64,000 nt of DNA from Phaeosaccion multiseriatum (GCA_965112735.1 OZ218950.1:7316001-7380000); one strand, 5' to 3'. Counted from the first letter of the stretch, positions 44,713 to 64,000 are shown. The notes: generated by a model not told the origin, from the sequence alone. Made by a program: numbers and translations.

Positions 44713-47469
44713 TCACTCCTTGTTCGTGGCTTGTGGAGCAATAGCGATGGCCATCCCCTCCACCCAGTGCTTGTCGTCCCCGTTGTAGTACTCGTAGGCG
44801 CGAGAGCTGCTGCCTCGAAACAGCCCGGGAGACGCCGCCAGACAGTCGAAGGAAATCTGCGTAGAGGAAGGTAAGGGCCAAAGGAAGGAGGCAAGGCAAG
44901 AACGGGAGAAAGTCTGTGCTCAGTGCTCAGTCGAAGGAAGGAGCGGGGAGTGGTGCGATGCATTGCTCTCTCGGGCCTCTCTCCATGCCGCTGGACCAAG
45001 ACACCCACAAACACACCCGACCCTGGCCTCGCTGCTGCTCTCACCCCCCCCCCCCTCTCACCCACCTGAATGGTCTGTGCTGGCTCCAGCCCGTCCCAAT
45101 ACAGCGTCACGACATTTCCCTCCCTGACCTCGAAGGCGGCCACTTGTCCTGCCCTCCTGAGCTCAGAGAGCCGGCCCAAGCGTGGCTCCAGACCAAAGGG
45201 GAGCCCAATCTCGGCCACCACCATGCCCGTCCGGCGGGAGGGGGAAGCGTTGTGTATCGCTGCTACAACGTCCACGGCCTCTCCCACAGCGCTGCGGGCG
45301 AAGGTCTCTGTGCCAACCGTGATTCCCCCCTCGGAGGCTTCCTCCTTCTCCTTAGAGGCGTCGCTGCCAGCTGTGAGCAGGTGTGTGCGTAAGTGGACAG
45401 GGGCAGCTCCGGTGGAGGGCGGCAGCAACACACGCCACGAGAGTGCAAGGGACCAAGGCAGTTTCGCCTCTCCCCCAGAAGAAGAAGAGGAAGAGGTCTG
45501 ACGTCTGGCCTCACCCTCGCCCCCCTCCCCCTCCTCCTTGCCCTCCTTCAGCGGGTGGTGGTACAGGCGGAGCGTGTAGGGCATACCCGGCAGCAGCTGC
45601 GGGAGGAGGCCCTCTGTGGGTAGAGGCAAGGGCCTTCCCGCCCTCTCAGCGAGAGTGGCCTTGTCGAGGCGAGTAGAGCTTGATGCCAAGGTGCCTGTGG
45701 CTGCTGCGTCGAGGCTGAGTTCAATCAAAGAAGGGTGGACGTTGCTCGATCTGCGGCGACAAGGCGCGAAGGAGAAGAGGAAGGGAGCGTAATGAGAGAG
45801 AGAGACAGAGACAGAAGCAGCGAGAGAAGAGAGAAGGAGACAAACACAGTATCTGACAGTATCAGTGCCCCCCTCTGAGTGCCCCCCTCTCAGTGGACTT
45901 GGCCCAATGAGCCTCACCTCCTGTCCTCGTAGGCGAGAATGGCCTTGAGGGCGAGCACCGTGCCTTGCGTGCTGCCGAACACTCCACCGCTACACTTGCC
46001 GGCGAGCCATCGCACCCCCTTCTCTGTGGCCTCTACCCACTCGCCCTCCCCCTCCCCCTCGCCCGTCTCCTCCTCCTCCTCGTCCTCCTCGTCCGTGAGC
46101 CAGGCGAGCAGTGCGATGGCCGTGGTCTCAATCACGAGCGGAGTGTTGCGAGAGCTCGTGATGGACGTCTCGGCGCCTGTGAAGAAAGGATGGGAGGGGA
46201 GAGGTGAGAAGAGGGGAGGGGAGAGAGGGGCGAAAGAACAAGACAAAGGAAGAGAAAACGGGTAGAGAGTAGCGAGCGAGGGGGGGGAGAAGCGGTGGCA
46301 AAACATGCCGAGCACACGTTAAGTAAGCAAGGATACGTCCACTGGGGTATGTCCACTTGGGAATGCCCAAGAAAGCTTGAAAGCTTCCCCCCCACCCCCG
46401 ACCGTCGTACCTCCCACGGCCCCGTCCTCTGCCTGCAGGCCCTTGAGTCTCCTTGCGAGTGTGCGTCCCTCCTCCCTCCTCCCATCCGCGAACATGGTGG
46501 CCGCTGCAAGGCCGAGCTCGTACGGGTCCTTGAATGAGAGGGCGTTGACACGCGCCCACAGAGCGTCGATCTCTCGGTCCATCTCTCCGCCCCCCCCCAG
46601 CCCCGCGGACACGAGCGAGTAAATGATGTAGGCATCTGTGAGTCCTGCGGGGGCGTATCCGAACCCGTCAAGCGCCGCCTTGTCCTGCTTGAAGCCGCCC
46701 TCCCCGTCCCTGCGGCCAAGGATCCACTTCTTTGTGCGTTGCACCACCTCGTCCATACCATCCACCACCTGTCCCTGCAACGGGGGTAGGTACGGGGAAA
46801 CGAAGGGTTTGGGTTAGGCTCCCTTGTCAGAGGCGAGATGGGGGACAGCACTCAAGTCATCATCCATCCGCTACCACTCTTGACGGCGCAGACAAGACAA
46901 ACATTACTGCCTCCCCCTCCTCTCCCTCCTCAACGTACCAGGACGGGTACCATGTCAATGAACTGAAGCAAACCGTACGCAGTCAGTGCCTCGTGGGCGG
47001 GCGCCCTCCCAAACCACTCGAAGCCGCCCCCCTCGCTCTCGAAGGCGAGCAGCTTCTTGTACCCCGACTGGAGGTGAGCGAGTGCCCTCTCCCTGAGGCC
47101 TTTGTTGCTCTCGCTCTGGTGCTTGTCGAGGTAGCGCAGCGCTATGACCATGGGGTAAGTTGTGGCGGAGGTCTGCGAAGGGTTGGGGATAGTGCATCAT
47201 AGGGTTGGGGTTAGTGACATAAAGGGAGATGCCTGCCACACAAGGGCTTGCAGTCAACGGTGTATACACAAGAACATGTACGCGAGGATTCAGTCCCACA
47301 CGCCCAGGGCGCATTTCATCCAAAACAACTCATACGGCACGACGCACTGAAGTCACAGATGGCAGCGACACATGAGCGACACACACACACACATACACAC
47401 ACACATACACACACAGACACACACACACGCACACACAGACACACACTCACACACACACACATACACACA

Positions 47470-52856: not shown

Positions 52857-54566
52857 ATGGTCCCTGCAATGACGGGAATGGGGTGGCCTTGTGGTGTGGA
52901 GGCGCCCAAGCTCTGCCGCAGCACAGTTGGAGCAGCGTTTGTGCTCAGCGGTCCTAGCTTGTTTACGAGAAAGAGCAAGAGGGACAGCGGTAGCGGTAGC
53001 AGCAGCAGGAGGGGCGCGGTGTATGGCAAGGATAGCAAGAGCAGGCGTGAATGGGGGGGGGAGTGGGAGGGCTGGGGGAACGGGCAGAAGGCGGCCGCCT
53101 TTGTCCAAGCGGCGGCACCAGTTGGAGCCGCGGCCACGGCAGCGGAGCTGTTGAAGAAGCGGCAGGTGGGGCTGGTGAAGGAGATTCAGCGGCTGGGGGG
53201 CGGCAAGAAGAGCGGCAGGAAGGGGAAGGACCCAGTGGTGGAGGCGCTTGAGAGGGCCAAGCAGGCAGGGCTCCCGCTCAACACCATCATCTACAACGCA
53301 GCCATCCGCCAGAGCGGTAGCTGGGCGGCATCTCTCGCCCTTCTGCAGGAGCTCAAAGACCACGCAGAGCTTAAACCAGACATTATTAGCTTCGGCTCGG
53401 CCCTGGTGGCGTGCAGCTTGGCGGGGCGCTGGGAGGAGAGTGAGGGGCTGCTGACGGAAATGGAGAAGGAGCACGGGCTGCAGCCAGACGTGCGCTGCTA
53501 CACGTCCCTCATGGCGGCCTACAGCACAGCAGGCAGGTACGACGCCGCGCTAGGCGTATTGGCCACAATGGTGGAGGAGAAGGGACTCAAACCGGATATT
53601 GTCGCGTACAACACCGCCATCACGGCCTCGGGGCAAGCGGGCAGGCCGGACAGGGCCCTGCAGGTGGTGCAAGAGATGGAGCAAAGGGGGCTCAAGCTCA
53701 ATGTCATCTCGTACAGCGCTCTCGTGACGGCTTACGGGAACGCCGGGCAGCACGAGAAGGCCCTTCAGGTAGTGAAGGAGGACATGAAAAGCGCGGGGCT
53801 CAGACCTGACGTCATCACCTACGGGGCCCTCCTATCTGCTTGCGGGAAGGCAGGGGCCCTGACGGCCGCGCGAGACGTGCTGGCGGAGATGCGAGAGAGA
53901 GGGCCCCGCCCTAATGCGGCGTGTCACGTGGCGCTCGTGAGTGCGTGTGTGCGTGCGGGGCAGCTGGATGACGCGGTAACAGCCTGGAGGGGGATGGCAG
54001 CCGAGGGGGGGGGGCTTCTGCCCGACCTCTCTGCGTGCGCCTCTCTCGTGAGTGCGTTGGGCAAGGCGGGTCGCCACGCAGACGGCTTGGAGCTGCTCCG
54101 AGAGGCGCTGAGGTTGGGCTTGAGGCCGGACATGGCGTGCTTCAACAATGCCCTCTTCGCGTGTGGTAAAGCAGGGGACGTGGACGCTTGTTTGTCGGTG
54201 CTAAGAGACATGAAGGCGGAGGGGCGAGTGGAGCCTGATGCGGGGTCTTTGAGCTCCCTGCTCATGGCGTGCGGGAGGGCGGGATCTGCGCAGAAGGCAC
54301 TCAATGTGTTCCGCAAGATGAGAAGCGCGGGCCTCACACCGAGAGAGACCGCATACAACGCGCTGCTGCTGGCCCTGGCAGAGGCTCTGGAGGGGGGGGG
54401 GGAGGGCAGGGGCAAGATGCGCCTCGTGGCAGGGGAGGTCGTGAAGGACATGAAGAGAGTGGGCTTTAAGCCCAGCACTGCAGTGAGCACCGCTTTCGAG
54501 GGAGCGGGCATGCCGCTGGGGCAGGAGGAGAAGGGGGACGAGGAGGAGGAGGAACCAAGCCCGTGA
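52857..54566 (+). CDS. Single-exon P-type PPR protein (about 10 repeats)
   Basis: 569-aa ORF with tandem PPRs (PDVRCYTSLMAAYS, PDIVAYNTAITASG, LNVISYSALVTAYG, PDVITYGALLSACG). The exact start is uncertain. Confidence 0.92.
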   Translation: MVPAMTGMGWPCGVEAPKLCRSTVGAAFVLSGPSLFTRKSKRDSGSGSSSRRGAVYGKDSKSRREWGGEWEGWGNGQKAAAFVQAAAPVGAAATAAELLKKRQVGLVKEIQRLGGGKKSGRKGKDPVVEALERAKQAGLPLNTIIYNAAIRQSGSWAASLALLQELKDHAELKPDIISFGSALVACSLAGRWEESEGLLTEMEKEHGLQPDVRCYTSLMAAYSTAGRYDAALGVLATMVEEKGLKPDIVAYNTAITASGQAGRPDRALQVVQEMEQRGLKLNVISYSALVTAYGNAGQHEKALQVVKEDMKSAGLRPDVITYGALLSACGKAGALTAARDVLAEMRERGPRPNAACHVALVSACVRAGQLDDAVTAWRGMAAEGGGLLPDLSACASLVSALGKAGRHADGLELLREALRLGLRPDMACFNNALFACGKAGDVDACLSVLRDMKAEGRVEPDAGSLSSLLMACGRAGSAQKALNVFRKMRSAGLTPRETAYNALLLALAEALEGGGEGRGKMRLVAGEVVKDMKRVGFKPSTAVSTAFEGAGMPLGQEEKGDEEEEEPSP

Positions 54567-55590
54567 ATGAAGGAAAATGCAGTGAATCAATTATTAATGC
54601 AATGAAGCAGAGTTCTTTCCACAAAGAGCTTCGGGGAGAGAAGTGGCGGCGTCAGCGTGCAGCGCTATTGTTTTGCTCCACTCCTGCGAAGTGCGTGGCC
54701 CCTGCATGTCCTCTGCTGCGCTGTGCCTTCCTTCGTACTCTGCTGGCTTTGCGTGCCTTCATCGGCATTCACGAACAAGGGAATCACAGAGGAATGGAAG
54801 GACCTCCCTCCCCGACTCCCTCCCTCCCTCCCTCTCTGTTGGGAGTCTCGTGCCCCTCCTGCGGGGCTGCTCGTCCTTCGTTGGAGGCTCGGAGCTGCTG
54901 CCTCCTTGCCTCTCACAGCTGCTACTGCTTTCTAAAGGGCCAGACACGCCACAGGGGGCCCTTCTCCACTCCTTTCTCATCTCTTTAGCTCTGTCCATGC
55001 CGCGCAACATGAATGGTGTGCGGCCATGATTGGCATGATTGGGTCCCTGTTGGGCCCCTGCTTAGGCTCTTCCCTTCCACCCCGCTCAGACCGGCTGCAG
55101 CCGCGCCTCCCTTGACTCCTGCGGGGAGTGCATATGTCTGTCTTGAGCGGACGAGTGAGCGAACGAGTGAGTGGGCGGACGCCAGACGCCTCGATGCCCC
55201 TCCTCTTGATATCACCGGCCCTGCCCTGCCCGAGAGAGAGTGAGAGTCGCGCTGCACAGCCTTCTCTGGCCTTGCGCCTTTCCTTCCGTGGTGCGGAGAC
55301 TGTGTACGGTGCAGTCGGCCGGCAAGAGAGAGCCCAGGGCCAACAGATACCCTATACCCATACACTACCCACATGGGGGCCAAGAGGGGGAGGGAGAGGG
55401 AGGAGCATCTTGGAAGCGAGGCTGCTGAGCCGAGCAGGCAGCACCTCTCACTCTGCCGCAAGCCCACGGCCTACCCGGGCTCTCCTCTCATTGCCTCTCG
55501 TGAGGACGCTGCCATGGTATCTAAAGCACGCGTGTGTCTAAACCCCATCGCGCTTCACCTCCACCTGCTGCTACTGCCATCGGGCTACCG

Positions 55591-56499
55591 CTACTCTCCC
55601 TCGTCCTCCTCCTTGCCCTGCTCCTCCTCCTCCTGGACGGGCTGTAAATCCCGAACGGCCTCTCTCAGCACGCTGTCCACGCACCGCCGCGCCATGCCCG
55701 GTTGAGGGAACATGGCAGAGGTGGCCTGGATTGCCGAGCTGCGTACGCACGCCACATCCACGCCCTCTACCCCGTCCCCATCTGCGGCTGCTGACCCGGA
55801 AACACGTGACATACACTTGTCGATCCACGAGCCAAAGGCGGACAATTTGGTCCTGTCCACACGGCACTCCGCCTCCCTCGCCGCTCGCACCTCGCTGTAG
55901 GCCAGCTGTGTGCAGCTGCGGAGGTCTCTCTTCCCCACGCAAATGTCGTAGGCGTGAACGAGCTCGTGGGTGAGCGCCTCCTCCATCTCGCGTCTGTTCT
56001 GGAGGCGGTTGGCACAGAGCGTAATCTCCATGGGCCCCACCTCGAGCAAGGCTCTGGCCGTGCCCTCCGCACCGTCCTCGGAGCAGACGGCGCAGCGAAT
56101 GGGCAACTCGCTCTCGCAGTTGAACAGTTCTGCCGCGGAGCCTACAAAAGCACCGCCAGATCTCACGGCTGCAAAGGGATTCATCTCTCCCTCGCCCTGC
56201 TGCAGCGCTTCCTTTTGCTGCGCCCCGTCTGCTGCTGCCGTTGCTGTTGCTGCTGCTGCTGCTCCTGCTACCGCTGCTCTTCCTCGTGCTGCAGGATTCA
56301 AGCCTGAATGCAAAGAGGTCCTTGCCACCCCTGGTCCTTCCCTGCTGGTGCTGCTGGAGCTGCTCAGGCCTGCGGCCTGCGCGCGCTCCCTAGCTCTCTG
56401 CATGGCGTCGTACAGCTGTTTGCACCGCCCCGGCGCTCGCCGGCCTTCCATCTGATCCATGATGACCTTCAGTGAGGCCTCGCACGTATCGCAGTCCAT
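55591..56499 (-). CDS. ATP23: Mitochondrial inner-membrane metalloprotease ATP23 (peptidase M76)
   Basis: ITLCANRL..MEEALTHELVHAYD (HExxH), CTQLAYSEVRAA and CVRSSAIQAT...CVDSV. Single exon with Ala/Ser-rich insertions. Confidence 0.88.
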   Translation of the reverse strand: MDCDTCEASLKVIMDQMEGRRAPGRCKQLYDAMQRARERAQAAGLSSSSSTSREGPGVARTSLHSGLNPAARGRAAVAGAAAAATATAAADGAQQKEALQQGEGEMNPFAAVRSGGAFVGSAAELFNCESELPIRCAVCSEDGAEGTARALLEVGPMEITLCANRLQNRREMEEALTHELVHAYDICVGKRDLRSCTQLAYSEVRAAREAECRVDRTKLSAFGSWIDKCMSRVSGSAAADGDGVEGVDVACVRSSAIQATSAMFPQPGMARRCVDSVLREAVRDLQPVQEEEEQGKEEDEGE

Positions 56500-57249
56500 T
56501 GTGCAATGGACTAATTAAGGGGGGGCGGCGAGAGCGCCAGCCTTCAGGCTGACATCGTTTTTTTTTTATGTTGTGTTTCGCCAACACTCTTTGGACCCAG
56601 TCCTTCGCCCTTTTATACACTTACTACTTGCTTCTCCCTCGAAAAGGAGCAGGGTTTCCAGATGCCAGACCAAGCCAGATGGAGATGCGCAAGGAAGGAA
56701 AAATCAGTTTCAGTTTCACGGCTGGTTCGCCTCCATTATTCCAATCTCCCCCCCTTGAGAGCTGGTCCGAGGCCGCCAAAGCAATAGACGCATTGGTGTG
56801 CGTCAGGATGCCCTCCCAACTCACTGCTGGGCCTACCTGTTAGGCGGGCGATTGGTTTCGCCCCCGGCGGATTCGTTCGCCCCTCATCCCCCCCCCCCCC
56901 GTTTATCACGTGCTCTGTAGGAAGCCCTGGGAACTGCACGGACAAGGCCCTGTCTTTCAGCCGTGACACGGGGGGGAGAGGGGGGAAGGAGCGACTCAGA
57001 GCTGGTGTGCGGTGCATGGGCGCAGTGCCGATATCTTTTGAGGTGCATTTTTATTCTTTGGTGGGGCATAGTAGGGCGACAAAAGAGAAAGAGGAGAGAG
57101 GCGGGGAGGTGAAGAGGAGGGGAGGGCAAGATAGAGAAGAGGGTGAGTAGAGGAGGGGCAGCTAGAGTAGGGGGGGAAGACGGAAAAAGGGCGAGAGAGA
57201 CATACGAGGGAGACGGGGGGAGAAGAGTGGAAGGGCGATCGGTGCGAAA

Positions 57250-58866
57250 ATGCCACGGAAGAGGTGCCCGTGCAGTGTCGAGGGATGCAACAAGCAGCAG
57301 GTCCAAGGTGGAATATGCGTCGGTCACGGAGCTGTGGGCAGGAGGTGTTCTGTGGAGGGGTGTGAGAAACATCGTGTCCAAGGAGGGCTTTGTGTTGCTC
57401 ATGGTGCTGTGGTGAAGAGGTGTACTACTGAGGGCTGCGAGAAACAGCAGGTGCAAGGAGGACTCTGCGTTGGCCACGGAGCGGTGGTGAAGAGGTGCAC
57501 TGCTGAGGGGGGTTGTGAGAAGCAGCAGGTCCAAGGAGGTCTCTGCGTGGGTCACGGGGCAGTGCTCAAAAGATGTACGGTGGACGGGTGCGAGAAGCAT
57601 CGGATCCAAGGAGGACTCTGCGTTGGTCACGGGGCAGTGATCGTGGTCAAGAGGTGCACTGCTGAAGGGTGTAAGAAGCTGCAGGTCCATGGAGGGCTTT
57701 GTGTTGCTCATGGTGCTGTGGTCAAAAGATGTACTTGTGAGGGGTGTGACAAGCAGCAGGTGCAAGGAGGACTCTGTGTGGGCCACGGGGCTGTGATCAA
57801 GAAGGTTGAGAAAGCTGAGGCAGATGCGAAGGGTGCGAATGGTGCGATTGGTGAGAAGCGTCCACCCAAGAAGCGGGACTATGGAGCTGGGGGTAAGCGG
57901 TGCGCTGTGGAGGGGTGTCAGAAGCATCGGGTCCAAGCCGGACTTTGCGTGAGCCATGGCGCCGTGAAACTGCGCAAGAGGTGTACTGTGGACGGATGCG
58001 AGAAGCATCGGATCCAAGGCGGACTCTGCATGGCTCATGGAGCAGTGGTCAAGAGGTGCACTGTGGAGGGGTGTCAGAAGCTCCAGGTCCAAGGAGGGCT
58101 CTGCATTGGCCACGGCGCGGTGGTCAAGAGGTGCACTGCTGAGGGGTGTGAGAGGCAGCAGGTCCAAGGAGGGCTGTGCATTGGTCACGGAGCTGTTGGC
58201 AGGTGGTGTGAGAAGTATCCGGCCAAATCAGGCCTCGGAGCTGTGAAACCGCGTAAGAAGTGTACATTTGAGGGCTGTGAGAAGCAACCGCAGCAGGGAG
58301 GGCTTTGCGTGGGGCACGGAGGTGTGAAGAAGCACAGGAGGTGCACTGTGGAGGGCTGTGAGAAGCAGTCGAAGCAGGGGGGATTGTGTGTGTCCCATGG
58401 AGCTGTGGTCAAGAGGTGCTCTGTGGAGGGGTGCCAGAAGAAGGCAAAGCAGGGAGGGCTGTGCGTGGGGCACGGAGCCGTGGGCAAAAAGTGCTCTGTT
58501 GAGGGCTGCGAGAAGCACCGGGTCAATGGAGGAGTCTGCATTGGCCATGGCGCAGTGATTGTGGTCAAGAGGTGCAGCGAGGTGGGATGTGAGAAGCAGA
58601 CCCAGAGTGGGTGTGGTGGGATGTGCAGGCGCCACGCTCGAATGAAGATGGAGCAAGGCAGGAAGGAGGAGGAGCTGCTTGCCCAGAGGGCGCTTGCGCT
58701 CAAGCGAGGAGCTGACACCGACATGAATGGGGAAGGAGGGAAGAGGGCAAGGTTTGCCCCTCCACATGAGGGAGGAGAGGGAGAGCAGCGACAGGAGGAA
58801 GTGGTGGACGCAGAGGACGAGGAGCTGGGAGCAAGCTTGCTCGTCGGGCTGCGGCTCAGGAGATAG
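57250..58866 (+). CDS. Cys3His zinc-finger array protein (WRKY19-like repeat, no WRKY domain), 16 repeats
   Basis: 16 units of C-x2-[ED]GC-x-K-x4-GG-x-C-x2-HG, basic NLS-like linkers and an acidic C-terminus ending ELGASLLVGLRLRR. Confidence 0.9.
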   Translation: MPRKRCPCSVEGCNKQQVQGGICVGHGAVGRRCSVEGCEKHRVQGGLCVAHGAVVKRCTTEGCEKQQVQGGLCVGHGAVVKRCTAEGGCEKQQVQGGLCVGHGAVLKRCTVDGCEKHRIQGGLCVGHGAVIVVKRCTAEGCKKLQVHGGLCVAHGAVVKRCTCEGCDKQQVQGGLCVGHGAVIKKVEKAEADAKGANGAIGEKRPPKKRDYGAGGKRCAVEGCQKHRVQAGLCVSHGAVKLRKRCTVDGCEKHRIQGGLCMAHGAVVKRCTVEGCQKLQVQGGLCIGHGAVVKRCTAEGCERQQVQGGLCIGHGAVGRWCEKYPAKSGLGAVKPRKKCTFEGCEKQPQQGGLCVGHGGVKKHRRCTVEGCEKQSKQGGLCVSHGAVVKRCSVEGCQKKAKQGGLCVGHGAVGKKCSVEGCEKHRVNGGVCIGHGAVIVVKRCSEVGCEKQTQSGCGGMCRRHARMKMEQGRKEEELLAQRALALKRGADTDMNGEGGKRARFAPPHEGGEGEQRQEEVVDAEDEELGASLLVGLRLRR

Positions 58867-58869
58867 GGA

Positions 58870-59110
58870 CCTGGGCTGGAGTAAAGTGCTGCTCCTTCTC
58901 CTGCTGCTGCAGCTGCTGCCCCACTGCGGTGTGCGCACGAACAGCAAGAGGGTCAGTGCGGAGAGCCCGATGCTCGGGAGGAGGAGGGGGGATGATGATG
59001 GTGATGGATGAGGAGAAGTGGGCGGTGCTGGAGGGGAGCGTGGTTGCGGCGAGTGAGAGCAAGCGGCGGGGATGGAAGGCGCAGCGAGCTTGTGGAGAGC
59101 TCTGCTAATC
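58870..59110 (+). repeat. Dispersed repeat family, copy B (3' of finger gene 1)
   Basis: Shares the core with 4868-4916 and is near-identical to copy C. Confidence 0.8.
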
Positions 59111-60241
59111 TCTTCTCCTCCTTGCTGCTGATACCTCTTGACTTGAGCTTCCTTGACCCGAGGGCCCCAGGCCGTCCGCCTCCTCGTCTTCGCGTGTATG
59201 TACAATCAGAAAGTTAAGCACTACAAGTACATAATATGATGAGGAAGAGGGAGAAGGCTTTTGAGGCAATGCAAAATGCGGCGTGTATGGAAAGCCCGGC
59301 TCCGGCGCCGTCCGTACGATATTGACGAGGGGTTTCCGCATCTTTCTCTGTTCGCCGCGAGCTTTTCGTAGCTGAAGGGAGGCGTGAGAGCGAGGCCAAT
59401 CAAGACAAGACGTGTACACGGTGTCGTTTACTTTAAGTTCCTGTACCTGGGGCGTCGTTCCCAATCGTTCCGCATTGATTGGGGAGTTTCAGTTTAAGTT
59501 CCTTTGTTCCAATTTGAGCTTGTTCGCCCTCCCTCTGAACAGAAGTCCTCTTTCAAAGAAGGGAGGATTAGTCGCAGTCAAAGGGGACGGGACCCTTTGT
59601 CGTGCGTCGAGGCTAGAGGTCTCTATATCTCACTACGGGGCCTACTTCTTCGGACGAGGGATTGAACTCATCCCGGGGCGAAAAGTTTGACCCGGCTTGT
59701 TCCCCCCACACCTTTTCCCAAGACAGGCAGATACTGCCCCAAACACCGAAGCCCCCTTCGCACCGGCCACGAGAGAGAAGGTGAGGGAGGAACTTTCAGA
59801 GCTGGTGTGTGGCGGGTGGGCGTGAGGAGCTCATTTCCCGAGGTGAGAAACAAAGGAGGTGCAAGCAGGAATGATGAGGAGTGGCATTATGGCCGACGCG
59901 GGGAGATGACCCAACTCACCACCCAAGCTCGGGCACTGCTCTGTTGGTCTTTGACCCCCCCTCCCCCCCCCTGTGACCCCCTTCCTCCTCCTCACCCTTT
60001 GACCCTCTCCATCTCCTCTCGTCTCCTCCCTCCGTCCCCCATCTCCGCCTCCCTCTCCCCCGCCCCCTTCCCTCCTGCCTTCGATTGGCGACATCGTGCC
60101 CAACGCACAAGCAGACATAAACAAAGCACAGTACGCGCTTTCCTCGCGGCAGAGGCGAGCGCCGGGGCGAGGACGGACGAGGACGGAGGCAGCGGAACAG
60201 AGGAGCAAGAAGAGAGGTGGCAGAGAGGAGTTGGTGCGAAA

Positions 60242-61372
60242 ATGCCGCATGAGAAGAGTCCGGGCACTGTCGAAGGATATGACAAGCAGCAAGGGCAAGA
60301 GGGACTTAGTGTGGATCATCAAGCTGTGGGCAAGAAGGATGAGCAGGCTGAGAAGGCGGACAGTCGTGAGAAGGCTGAGAAAGCTGAGAAGGGCGCGAAG
60401 GCTGCGAAGGGTGCGAAGGGTGCGAAGCGTGAGAAGAAGCCGCCCAAAAAGCGAGACTATGGAGCTGGGGGCCAGCGGTGTTCTGTGGAGGGGTGTCAGA
60501 AGCATCGGGTCCAAGGAGGAATCTGCGTGAGCCACGGAGCCGTGAAAATGCGCAAGAGGTGCAATGTGGAAGGGTGCGAGAAGCATCGGATCCAAGGCGG
60601 ACTCTGCATGGCTCATGGAGCAGTGGTCAAGAGGTGCACTGTGGAGGGGTGTCAGAAGCTCCAGGTCCAAGGAGGGCTCTGCATTGGCCACGGCGCAGTG
60701 GTCAAGAGGTGCACTGCTGAGGGGTGTCAGAGGCAGCAGGTCCAAGGAGGGTTGTGCATTAGTCATGGGGCTCTGGGCAAGTGGTCTGAGAAGCAACCGG
60801 TCAAGAAAGGGCTTTACGGCGGCGGAGGTGTGAAGAAGCACAGGAGGTGCACTGTGGAGGGCTGTGAGAAGCAGTCGAAGCAGGGGGGATTGTGCGTGTC
60901 TCATGGTGCTGTGGTCAAGAGGTGCTCTGTGGAGGGGTGCCAGAAGAAGGCAAAGCAGGGAGGGCTGTGCGTGGGGCACGGAGCCGTGGGCAAAAAGTGC
61001 TCTGTTGAGGGCTGCGAGAAGCACCGGGTCAATGGAGGAGTCTGCATTGGCCATGGCGCAGTGATTGTGGTCAAGAGGTGCAGCGAGGTGGGATGTGAGA
61101 AGCAGACCCAGAGTGGGTGTGGTGGGATGTGCAGGCGCCACGCTCGAATGAAGATGGAGCAAGGCAGGAAGGAGGAGGAGCTGCTTGCCCAGAGGGCGCT
61201 TGCGCTCAAGCGAGGAGCTGACACCGACATGAATGGGGAAGGAGGGAAGAGGGCAAGGTTTGCCCCTCCACATGAGGGAGGAGAGGGAGAGCAGCGACAG
61301 GAGGAAGTGGTGGACGCAGAGGACGAGGAGCTGGGAGCAAGCTTGCTCGTTGGGCTGCGGCTCAGGAGATAG
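60242..61372 (+). CDS. Tandem paralogue zinc-finger array protein, 8 intact repeats
   Basis: ATG context GGTGCGAAAATGCC is identical to gene 1. The first repeat has decayed (TVEGYDKQQGQEGLSVDHQ). The 3' half is near-identical to gene 1 at offset 2506. Confidence 0.85.
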   Translation: MPHEKSPGTVEGYDKQQGQEGLSVDHQAVGKKDEQAEKADSREKAEKAEKGAKAAKGAKGAKREKKPPKKRDYGAGGQRCSVEGCQKHRVQGGICVSHGAVKMRKRCNVEGCEKHRIQGGLCMAHGAVVKRCTVEGCQKLQVQGGLCIGHGAVVKRCTAEGCQRQQVQGGLCISHGALGKWSEKQPVKKGLYGGGGVKKHRRCTVEGCEKQSKQGGLCVSHGAVVKRCSVEGCQKKAKQGGLCVGHGAVGKKCSVEGCEKHRVNGGVCIGHGAVIVVKRCSEVGCEKQTQSGCGGMCRRHARMKMEQGRKEEELLAQRALALKRGADTDMNGEGGKRARFAPPHEGGEGEQRQEEVVDAEDEELGASLLVGLRLRR

Positions 61373-61375
61373 GGA

Positions 61376-61600
61376 CCTGGGCCGAAGTAAAGTGCTGCTC
61401 CTTCTCCTGCTGCTGCAGCTGCTGCCCCACTGCGGTGTGCGCACGAACAGCAAGAGGGTCAGTGCGGAGAGCCCGATGCTCGGGAGGAGGAGGGGGGATG
61501 ATGATGGTGATGGATGAGGAGAAGTGGGCGGTGCTGGAGGAGAGCGTGGTTGCGGCGAGCGAGAGCAAGCGGCGGGGATGGAAGGAGTGAGCGTGTGCGC
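61376..61600 (+). repeat. Dispersed repeat family, copy C (co-duplicated with finger gene 2)
   Basis: Near-identical to 58870-59080. Confidence 0.8.
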
Positions 61601-61984
61601 TGTTGCTGCTGATATCTCGGGACTTGAGAGCTTTAGTGGCCAGATCGCCCTACTTCCGTCCGCCTCACAGCGGTGTTTTTGATGTGCGAGGTGAATCATA
61701 AAAGTACTTACTACGCGTAGAGTGAAGTGATGAATTACGCTGTGCCCAGAGGCAGAGAAGAGGCCTTCGGCGTTGTTGATGCTTCCAAACACTCACCACC
61801 AACCCGTGCTATGTGCGGCATTTGGGCATTTGCGCCAGAGCGGCGAGGCAAGTGAGACGCGTCATTGAGGGAATGGCCGGACCAGTCACTGGCAGCCCTG
61901 TGCATATGATTGCGACGAGGGTTTCCGCACTCTATTGTTTGCGGTGAGCTTTCCGTCGCCTGCGCTGTGCGCACAACGGGGGGG

Positions 61985-62160
61985 GGGGGGGGCACGATCC
62001 GAGGCTTTGTGACTGCCCACAACCCCTTCATAAGAGGATGGGATGATGGTGGTGATGAGGAGGAGGGGGCGGTGCTGGAGGGGAGCATGGTGGCGGCGAG
62101 TGAGAGCAAGAGGGGCGGACGAAAGGCGCAGCGAGCTTGTGGAAGGCTCTGCTTCTCTTT
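61985..62160 (+). repeat. Dispersed repeat family, copy D
   Basis: GCACGATCCGAGGCTTTGTGACTGCC matches copy A (GCACGATCTGAGGCTTTGTGGCTGCC), followed by the shared core. Confidence 0.75.
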
Positions 62161-62417
62161 CTGCCTTCACAAGTAGACATTTCGGGACTTGGGGCTCTGA
62201 AAGTGTAATAGTAATGATTGATGACTTACACCCGGCCACAGGAGGCCCACAGGTGTCTGTAGAAAACACTCGCACACGCCTATTTCTGGTGGGCCTTAGG
62301 ATTAGGTCTACATGCCTATATCTGGGGGGCCTCAGGATTAGGTCTCGTACACAGTTTCCTGTAAACAAACACGGTGTCGACAATTCGAACACGACACACG
62401 GGCGTGGGGATGGCAGC

Positions 62418-63647
62418 TCACGAGGAGAAGTCCAGCGCCTGCATGCTGGCGAGGATGGCCACCACCGCCAGCGTCTGTGCGGCGGCCACAGAGCCCAGCA
62501 CCGATACGTACATGGACGAGCCGTAGCGGATGGGCTGGAATGCCTGCACGCCGAATATAACCTTGACGAACAGCCACACCACGGTGGTGACCAGAAACAG
62601 CTCCACCGCGGCGCTGCTGAGCTCGTACAGCATGATCGTCCGGGCCATGGCGGTGGGCATGCCTGCGAAGGACGGGAATCCCGCGCCGCCGCCCACGCCC
62701 TCACGAGTGAGCACGAGCAGGATGAAGAGCGCAAGGAGAGGGTTCACTGTATCGTGCGTCTGTCAGGAGCAGAGGGAAGGGGGAGGCATATGGAGGCATA
62801 TGGTCATAAGGGGCAGCAACCAACAGAGCGTAGGAAGAGCAGGGCGGTCAGGGGGACTCGTGAAGCTTGTGTGAGGTGCCCGTCCCACGTTAGCACGCGC
62901 CCACGTCACCTGCTGCACGAAGAACTGTTGACTGAGGCGGAGGATGCGCTTCGGATCAGCCTCGGCGCGTTCCTTGGCCTTCCGCACTTGGGCTCCCACT
63001 GTCCACCACCACCGGTCCCGCTTGGGGGCCTCTTCCTCCTCTGCCACCGCTGCTGCTGCTGCCGCTGCGTCTGTGTGGGGCTGCTTCTGCTCGTACCCCG
63101 CCAGGGACTCCCTCCTTACCGCCGCCTGCTCCTCCCTCTCCGCCGAGTCCCTCCGCACCACCGCCTTTAGCTCCACCCAGTCCTTGGTCACTTGCGACAC
63201 CCGTCTCCGAGGGGCCACCTCCGTCCCCTGCTGCGAGGGGGGCGAGAGGCCTGGAGAGCCTTCTCCTCGCTCCTCCGTGTCGGGGTACGGTCTTTCGCAC
63301 TCGGTCTCTGACAACTCCAGGTTTGCGTGCTGGCCCCACCCTATCCGCTTGGCTGTTGGCGGGACGGACTCGGCTCCTTCGTCGCCAGCTTGTGATCTCC
63401 GAGACGTCGAAGGGGGCCGCACGTACGGCGAGACCACGTCCGCCTTGCCTTCGTCCTTGCCTTCGTCCTTGCCTTCATCTACCGGGGTCCCCGCGATGCA
63501 CTCCAGTCCCTTCTCTGCCCCACTCTCTGCCGAACCGCCTACCTCCAAGGCCCGCAAGGCCGCCTCGAGCTGGTTCCTTCCATCTGCTTTGCCCTTCGGC
63601 GATTGTCGCTCATCGTCCACCCCGGGGATGATCTTGGACTTGTACAT
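62418..63647 (-). CDS. Unknown membrane protein: disordered charged N-terminus plus ~3 C-terminal TM helices, 2 exons (62910-63647, 62418-62759)
   Basis: ATG at 63647 (MYKSKIIPGVDD). The in-frame GT-AG join FFVQQ|THDTVNPLLALFILL leads to hydrophobic segments and a stop at 62418. Upstream exons cannot be excluded. Confidence 0.6.
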
Positions 63648-63709
63648 CTTGAGACGTGTGTGAGACGCGCTAATGTGCTTCCGCGCACGCTGGATGGGGG
63701 TTGTGCGAG

Positions 63710-63780
63710 ACAGACTGAGCAGACAGAGCAGACAGAGCAGACAGAGCAGACAGAGCAGACAGAGCAGACGGAGCAGACAG
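63710..63780. repeat. 9-bp tandem repeat (CAGACAGAG, ~7 copies)
   Basis: Direct inspection. Confidence 0.9.
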
Positions 63781-64000
63781 GTGCAGGGGAGGGGAAGAAA
63801 GGCGAGGCGTGATAGGACGTTACACTCGTTACATCGGTTCTTCGCGGGGGTAAGGAGATTCGCGTAGGACTGATGCAGACGCCAGGAGAGTCGAGTAAAG
63901 GGGGCAGGGGCAAAGCGTACTGCACATACACGTTCCGCATGCACACACGCACACACGCACACACGCACACACGCACACACACACACGCGCGCGCGCACAG

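Follow-up and report, generated by a model that had tools for sequence, protein, structure and literature searches.

Tandem multi-finger Zf_WRKY19 genes of Phaeosaccion multiseriatum belong to a large lineage-specific family with candidate specificity residues

Two neighboring genes near a chromosome end of the stramenopile alga Phaeosaccion multiseriatum are tandem paralogues in a large lineage-specific family of multi-finger Zf_WRKY19 proteins. They lie within a window of 64,000 nucleotides (GCA_965112735.1 OZ218950.1:7316001-7380000; G000:C1:7316001-7380000) of a 7,404,487-base contig, ~27 to 31 kb from the contig end, as two long open reading frames (ORFs) on the + strand. Gene 1 (57250..58866) is an intronless ORF encoding 538 amino acids with 16 fingers, and gene 2 (60242..61372) encodes 376 amino acids with eight live fingers; both end in the same acidic, truncated tail. 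The pair is an atypical, C-terminally truncated, outlying branch of the family. Family membership and the anatomy of both genes are close to certain, and both genes are intact and, judging from their codon differences, under purifying selection. The pair is part of a striking lineage-specific expansion of a finger family that is catalogued but functionally unstudied. That the arrays read an extended ligand in modular fashion, most probably a nucleic acid, is proposed tentatively, with doubt somewhat outweighing belief.

Family assignment rests on profile searches. Every unit of both proteins is assigned to Pfam PF24906 (Zf_WRKY19), in agreement with the initial annotation, which had recognized a WRKY19-type repeat; gene 1 scores 264.5 bits over 16 stretches (E 2e-80) and gene 2 146.6 bits over eight (E 2e-43), against a curated cutoff of 27 bits. 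The units follow the pattern C-x4-C-x9-C-x2-H (pattern scan; n=16 in gene 1 and n=8 in gene 2) with a period of 75 nt, equal to 25 residues (Tandem Repeats Finder), and the four ligands are intact in all 24 live units, one further unit of gene 2 being dead. In gene 1, unit 4 contains an additional Gly, and the array closes with an atypical cap finger, as it does in every family member. No transcription activator-like effector (TALE), C2H2, A20, or EsV-1-7 model matches either window protein in a Pfam scan at E up to 1. The sole other Pfam match is weaker, to the CxC6 cluster found in KDZ transposases (PF18721; 33.6 and 29.0 bits versus a cutoff of 27.5 bits), and its score is added up from several weak stretches. 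A paralogue with 15 fingers scores 78.4 bits in the same way. Neither the window genes nor their immediate surroundings contain a transposase domain. The literature found under WRKY19-like, PF24906, or PTHR31827 consists solely of plant expression papers using the name, with no functional study among them.

Within a near-invariant scaffold, fingers differ mainly in the four residues after a Lys (positions 9 to 12, referred to here as words). The words of the initial annotation are reproduced exactly, in the same order, by a pattern scan of both genes: QQVQ, HRVQ, QQVQ, QQVQ, HRIQ, LQVH, QQVQ, HRVQ, HRIQ, LQVQ, QQVQ, QPQQ, QSKQ, KAKQ, HRVN, and QTQS in gene 1 and HRVQ, HRIQ, LQVQ, QQVQ, QSKQ, KAKQ, HRVN, and QTQS in gene 2. 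The small vocabulary extends to the family, with 56 distinct words among 226 fingers versus 89.5 ± 2.9 after column shuffling, a contrast that shared ancestry inflates, and positions 10 and 11 are coupled (R with V/I; S with K/R/Q). The claim that all four residues vary holds for positions 9 to 11 but not for position 12, which is nearly fixed as Q (0.72 bit); entropy in the window fingers is highest at positions 10, 9, 7, and 11 (1.5 to 1.9 bits), and positions 2, 3, 17, and 18 vary too. Among 205 fingers from the genomic clusters described below, the most variable positions are 17, 11, 9, 18, and 7.

The same positions, 7, 9, 11, 17, and 18, are the substitution hot spots in close finger pairs (n=121; from different genes and at most 8 nt apart). 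Nonsynonymous/synonymous counts are 30/3 at position 9, 35/1 at position 11, 22/1 at position 17, 14/2 at position 7, and 11/10 at position 18, while the Cys, His, and Gly positions have synonymous changes only. The ratio of nonsynonymous to synonymous differences per site (pN/pS; Nei-Gojobori) is 2.52 at positions 9, 11, and 17 and 0.11 in the scaffold; since these positions were picked after the counts had been seen and the finger pairs are nonindependent, the excess is read as consistent with diversifying selection rather than as proof of it.

Orthologues in oomycetes present the other face of this pattern. In two orthologue sets spanning Phytophthora, Bremia, and Peronospora, words are near-identical between species finger by finger, in proteins that are only 60 to 70% identical overall. 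The mean majority fraction is 0.81 to 0.92 at positions 9 to 12 and 0.89 at position 17, compared with 0.91 to 0.96 at the zinc ligands, 0.53 to 0.67 at positions 2 to 5 and 7, and 0.48 outside the fingers. Positions 9 to 12 and 17 nevertheless differ among fingers within one protein. Variation between fingers combined with fixation in each orthologous finger is the behavior expected of specificity determinants, and no other result speaks as strongly for the central idea of the initial proposal; the part of that proposal assigning specificity to the variable residues gains from both the nonsynonymous hot spots in the alga and the fixation per finger in oomycetes.

The family is large and young in this genome (67 Mb in 22 contigs). 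A six-frame PF24906 search finds at least 909 candidate fingers, and all 150 of the 150 that were scored exceed the cutoff. Big clusters occupy C1:0.08-0.77 Mb and C13:3.01-3.17 Mb, and 200 kb sampled from them contains 51 ORFs with 2 to 15 fingers. The cap finger and tail of gene 1 match 77 places in the genome, and the family comprises at least 77 genes; the nearest relatives of the window pair are on contig C8, at 45 to 56% identity. Adjacent paralogues vary widely in the number and order of their fingers, which supports the earlier suggestion that arrays evolve by gain, loss, and reordering of units.

Two features of these clusters deserve separate mention. On C13, ~10 finger-array genes are arranged head to tail, all on the - strand and ~2.5 kb apart (G000:C13:3145048-3169534), the same spacing as between the window genes. 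In addition, at least nine ORFs with finger arrays are interrupted within the Gly-Cys-Glu/Asp-Lys codons, and the same foreign peptide, MYIRAYGLSIGALEVSCNHV, follows the break (loci L017, L027, L041, L046, L047, L016, and L032/L033; e.g., G000:C1:532489-533550 and C13:3164345-3164947). These junctions fit site-specific insertion of an R2/CRE-like retrotransposon. Neither window gene has such an insertion, despite 14 degenerate target sites.

The structure of the finger was predicted with AlphaFold2 for fingers 8 to 11 of gene 1, using an alignment of 67 four-finger family segments (mean predicted local distance difference test [pLDDT] score, 90.3; predicted template modeling [pTM] score, 0.51). 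In all four modeled fingers, positions 0, 9, 12, and 15 are isolated bridge residues and positions 17 to 19 form a helical turn of three residues; the four ligand positions fall in a knuckle plus a turn, with no metal in the model. The finger would accordingly be a tight hairpin with positions 10 and 11 at its tip, and the C-x-x-H turn would present positions 17 and 18; solvent exposure of the variable residues was read solely from the DSSP string of the model. With so low a pTM score, the fingers are better pictured as beads on a string than as a rigid superhelix. Against predicted viral structures (BFVD), Foldseek gives 17 matches at E up to 0.001 (lowest, 9e-7), including giant-virus proteins, EsV-1-7 and EsV-1-115 of Ectocarpus virus 1, and phage HNH endonucleases, which makes the fingers fold-level kin of EsV-1-7 repeats.

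The two genes are related unit by unit. Fingers 1 to 8 of gene 2 correspond to fingers 8 to 11 and 13 to 16 of gene 1; gene 2 is without counterparts of gene 1 fingers 2 to 7 and 12, and a further finger at its start is dead. DNA identity climbs from 88% to 100% toward the 3' end, suggesting that the 3' part was recently gene converted or is of younger origin. The ratio of nonsynonymous to synonymous substitution rates (dN/dS) is 0.34 over 331 aligned codons. Furthermore, the 3' half of the pair has four synonymous, third-position differences and no nonsynonymous ones, where neutrality would predict ~8 nonsynonymous changes (P about 4e-4, with the downstream relic as the yardstick), and the truncated tail is free of amino acid changes since both copies last shared sequence. 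Together these figures argue that both genes have been kept by selection.

In gene 1, fingers 1 to 7 (57271..57795; first Cys codons at 57271, 57346, 57421, 57496, 57574, 57655, and 57730) are followed by an inter-block linker (57796..57900) that is rich in Lys, Glu, and Ala, carries the basic patch PPKKRDYG, and is homologous to the gene 2 linker in a protein alignment. The modeled fingers 8 to 11 (57901..58197; HRVQ, HRIQ, LQVQ, and QQVQ) precede a second linker (58198..58260), whose translation (CEKYPAK..GL..GAV) has lost the ligands and which looks like a decayed half finger. Fingers 12 to 15 (58261..58557) begin with a finger (QPQQ) that has no gene 2 counterpart, leaving a 24-residue gap. 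The cap finger (58573..58635; C-x4-C-x11-C-x2-H, ending GGMC..HARMK) leads into the acidic tail (58636..58863; isoelectric point [pI], 4.9), with ELGASLLVGL at 58819-58848. An earlier proposal that repeats 5 to 7 had been duplicated as 9 to 11 stands for the first pair only: units 5 and 9 share 88% DNA identity, whereas units 6 and 10 and units 7 and 11 share 79%, no more than they share with other units. All of these features, and those of gene 2, are on the + strand.

The reading frame of gene 2 extends from 59687 to 61372. Its start is placed at 60242, where an ATG homologous to that of gene 1 lies inside a block of 14 nt that recurs unchanged at the start of gene 1 (5' end DNA alignment). 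The dead finger 1 (60257..60322) has all three Cys replaced and the His retained, as seen in the same alignment and in translation. It is followed by an EKA/KGA-rich linker (60333..60436) with a 9-nt tandem repeat in 11.6 copies (Tandem Repeats Finder). Live fingers 1 to 4 (60479..60775) match gene 1 fingers 8 to 11 with 88, 94, 98, and 89% nucleotide identity, and fingers 5 to 7 plus the cap (60848..61141) match gene 1 fingers 13 to 16 with 95 to 100%.

Full-length family members continue from the cap finger through an acidic linker into a conserved domain of ~120 to 140 residues, which begins G(V/T)GL(L/I)A(G/R)LGLHVGDE and runs to a WAVLEESMVTASE..GRKALRACVRVEGP block near the C terminus. 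The window proteins align to this domain only through ...GASLLVGL (tblastn; GVGLLAGLGL in the cluster genes) and then stop. The rest is found downstream of both genes in two other frames: after the gene 1 stop at 58867..59100 (+ strand; ..SKVLLL..LPH..VRT.. and ..EEKWAVLE.S.V.ASE..) and after gene 2 at 61373..61590 (+ strand), with 4 differences in 213 nt between the two relics. The point at which the alignment ends and the out-of-frame relics together mark ELGASLLVGL as the stump of a lost domain, cut off by frameshifts in both genes. The initial annotation had correctly placed an acidic patch and ELGASLLVGL at the end of both proteins, in the same place; its likening of the motif to a free-standing corepressor helix is abandoned, as the motif aligns to the start of the family domain. 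An intron joining the gene 1 ORF to the downstream relic was considered and rejected, as an in-frame stop lies before the sole plausible GT donor.

The C-terminal domain itself is a family-wide orphan in the searches made. It has no match in Pfam and nothing above 0.78 in the ESM Atlas, a profile of the tail finds no relative among 1.84 billion representative proteins, and AlphaFold2 gives an unusable model of the domain (pLDDT, 39). A homologue search with the tail alone also has no match, being length limited and blind to full-length kin. A separate relic of the domain (61965..62150, + strand; ..TIRGFV.A....EEGAVLEGSMV..; 50.4-bit tblastn match) is what remains of a third gene copy. A run of ~13 G is present at 61976-61990, close upstream of this third relic.

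A mechanism can be sketched from these data. Each 25-residue unit would be an independent zinc knuckle in which three Cys and one His are predicted to hold one zinc ion; the hairpin would present residues 9 to 12, and the short turn linking the third Cys to the His would present residues 17 and 18. Short basic linkers (HGAVVKRC) would join the units, and the identity of a finger would be set by residues 7, 9, 10, 11, 17, and 18. Each finger may read one element of an extended periodic ligand, such that the whole array recognizes a long composite site, with downstream activity carried by the acidic tail or, in full-length relatives, by the orphan C-terminal domain. Arrays would diversify by gain, loss, and reordering of units together with substitutions at the identity positions, in a manner that resembles vertebrate KRAB-C2H2 clusters more than TALEs. 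Modular recognition as such is supported at the level of sequence comparison. Nucleic acid is the favored ligand because of the strict tandem packing, the short invariant basic linkers, and the basic fingers (pI 9.4 to 9.6) beside an acidic tail, and because of the KRAB-ZNF-like evolution, the fusions of some relatives to HSF or HA domains, and the similarity to KDZ cysteine clusters. The pI, the HSF/HA fusions, the CxC6 match, and the fold likeness to viral and HNH proteins are weak pointers to a nucleic acid context. Taken as a whole, with its mechanism, the favored statement is nearly evenly balanced, the doubts being slightly the heavier.

Several results weigh against nucleic acid recognition by these arrays. 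The geometry of the array is not fixed in a prediction with a pTM score of only 0.51. Foldseek finds no match in the PDB at E up to 0.001, a wide VIA-align comparison gives no Z of 2 or more, and a PDB profile search gives only chance-level C2H2 matches (YY1 and TFIIIA; E 0.1 to 1). The literature searched reports no binding for any Zf_WRKY19 protein, and the post hoc choice of hot spots noted above counts on the same side. The best local superposition is on the ubiquitin-binding ZF7 of A20 (3vux_G, 3vuy_D, and 3vuw_F; root mean square deviation, 1.1 to 1.7 Å over 22 to 25 residues; E above 2), which points to protein binding. The arrays could thus bind ubiquitin chains or repeated peptide motifs in an A20-like manner, with the hairpin tips as contact surface: among solved structures, only A20 ZF7-ubiquitin complexes give a good superposition on a single finger (Foldseek probability, up to 0.44), the C-x4-C-x9/11-C-x2-H spacing is close to the A20 pattern, and conserved specificity residues suit protein recognition as well as nucleic acid recognition. 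However, the A20 fold matches are nonsignificant (E above 1), Pfam zf-A20 is unmatched at E up to 1, the fingers form a strongly basic region, and very short invariant basic linkers joining 5 to 16 fingers in strict tandem would be typical of nucleic acid arrays. Protein binding is considered unlikely, though it is the alternative to be taken most seriously.

The other alternatives concern whether the window genes recognize anything. The words of the shared fingers are identical between gene 1 and gene 2 at 32 of 32 residues and hence are not fast evolving locally; hypervariability is a property of the family that is not seen in the window pair. In both genes the family C-terminal domain is truncated by frameshift, with its pieces lying downstream in other frames, finger 1 of gene 2 is without its three Cys, the third copy exists only as a relic at 61965-62150, and the site is subtelomeric. 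The window genes may therefore be on the way to decay. That they are functionless leftovers with a merely inherited word pattern is nevertheless improbable, as neither long ORF is broken, no ligand is missing from any of the 24 other fingers, and the dN/dS ratio and the exclusively synonymous 3' differences (4 of 4) given above speak for constraint. Cysteine-rich metal buffers, or structural proteins without a specific ligand, would account for the composition (~10% Cys and 4% His) and for the lack of a catalytic or other recognizable domain in Pfam; conservation of finger-specific residues across oomycete genera and a site-specific nonsynonymous excess would be unexpected in a bulk metal binder, which makes this alternative very improbable. 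A more ambitious version of nucleic acid recognition, also improbable and a little more so than decay, casts the family as a stramenopile counterpart of vertebrate KRAB-ZNF clusters, with fast-evolving arrays that would read transposon or giant-virus DNA or RNA via a simple, decipherable finger code and with the orphan domain as effector; the window pair, lacking the tail, would then be a derived form that may act as a regulator or a dominant negative, and the finger-codon retrotransposon would be part of the conflict.

Hundreds of young fingers constitute a natural experiment in which substitutions single out five or six positions, and the oomycete orthologues show these same positions held constant in fingers that have acquired a role. 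Together they chart, in concrete and testable form, the putative recognition surface of an unstudied finger class. Gene 1 and gene 2, with eight fingers in common, are a ready-made pair of arrays for binding comparison. If the ligand is a nucleic acid, the arrays would be a new multi-finger recognition scaffold, and if it is a protein, a new modular adaptor.

Elsewhere in the window, the upstream neighbor (55591-56499, - strand) is an intact Peptidase_M76 gene (ATP23-like mitochondrial metalloprotease; Pfam E 3e-19) with the motif HELVHAYD. A coding-like microsatellite at 63650-63900 reads QTE or SRQ, depending on the frame, and a TG-rich run at ~47420-47440 reads CVCVCV. Rfam has no match in 54000-64000.

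Zf_WRKY19 proteins of oomycetes, diatoms, and plants share with the window proteins the C-x4-C-x9-C-x2-H pattern, the tandem layout, and G5, K/N8, G13-G14, and G20, and most consist of fingers and nothing else. The best public relatives are unnamed metagenome proteins, diatom proteins, and oomycete proteins annotated as "WRKY19-like zinc finger domain-containing protein", and the best of them is just 46% identical to the window proteins; in some relatives the fingers are joined to a further domain, either HA or the HSF DNA-binding domain. What sets the alga apart is the very large size and young age of its expansion, the dedicated cap finger, and the orphan C-terminal domain; at position 10 it has S, R, Q, or P, where other Zf_WRKY19 proteins have Ala or Val. 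Zf_WRKY19 array proteins also occur in records from the stick insect Timema (P0008) and a Zetaproteobacteria metagenome bin (P0047), probably as contaminating stramenopile sequence.

EsV-1-7 proteins (PF19114; IMMEDIATE UPRIGHT [IMM] of Ectocarpus) likewise have tandem Cys-rich putative zinc fingers and tandem gene arrays. The EsV-1-7 family has expanded as tandem gene arrays in brown algae and the lineages sister to them (Denoeud et al., preprint), and EsV-1-7 is a possible new zinc finger class, with IMM controlling the early sporophyte pattern (Denoeud et al., preprint; PMC7457493). The four-finger model matches EsV-1-7 (E 1.8e-5) and EsV-1-115 (E 9.7e-5) of Ectocarpus virus 1 in Foldseek, but PF19114 (25-bit threshold) has no match to the window proteins at E up to 1, and the repeat here is shorter; one cluster gene has a marginal match (E 0.83) on its cap finger. 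True EsV-1-7 genes are present at 67 places in the genome (e.g., C1:4970361-4970906, C11:2891796-2899219, and C15:2129512-2131896), partly in long ORFs of up to 1641 amino acids, at loci distinct from the Zf_WRKY19 clusters, none of the 67 lying inside a finger cluster. Zf_WRKY19 fingers and EsV-1-7 repeats are separate families.

Among better-known systems, TAL effector repeats are 33- to 35-residue metal-free helical hairpins with two variable residues, each repeat reading one base. The initial annotation had called the arrays TALE-like, and the sole likeness is that of near-identical tandem repeats differing at a few residues; the units here are 25-residue zinc knuckles with a three-residue helix, five or six variable positions, and at least 56 words, and a code of one word per base is unsupported. 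A20-type fingers (C-x2-4-C-x11-C-x2-C) are alike in ligand spacing and give the best local superposition, but the fourth ligand here is His rather than Cys, the spacer is 9 rather than 11 residues, and A20 has no strict 25-residue tandem. The cysteine clusters of KDZ transposases are predicted to bind DNA. YY1, TFIIIA, and GLI fingers have the same first half-motif, C..(E/D)GC.K, but the second ligand pair here is C-x2-H after a 9-residue spacer rather than H-x3-5-H on a long helix, and the window fingers depart from the classical C2H2 pattern (C-x2-4-C-x12-H-x3-5-H) and its beta-beta-alpha fold. With KRAB-ZNF clusters and PRDM9, the algal family has in common many short fingers, short fixed linkers, tandem gene clusters, finger gain and loss, and a few identity positions with signs of diversifying selection.

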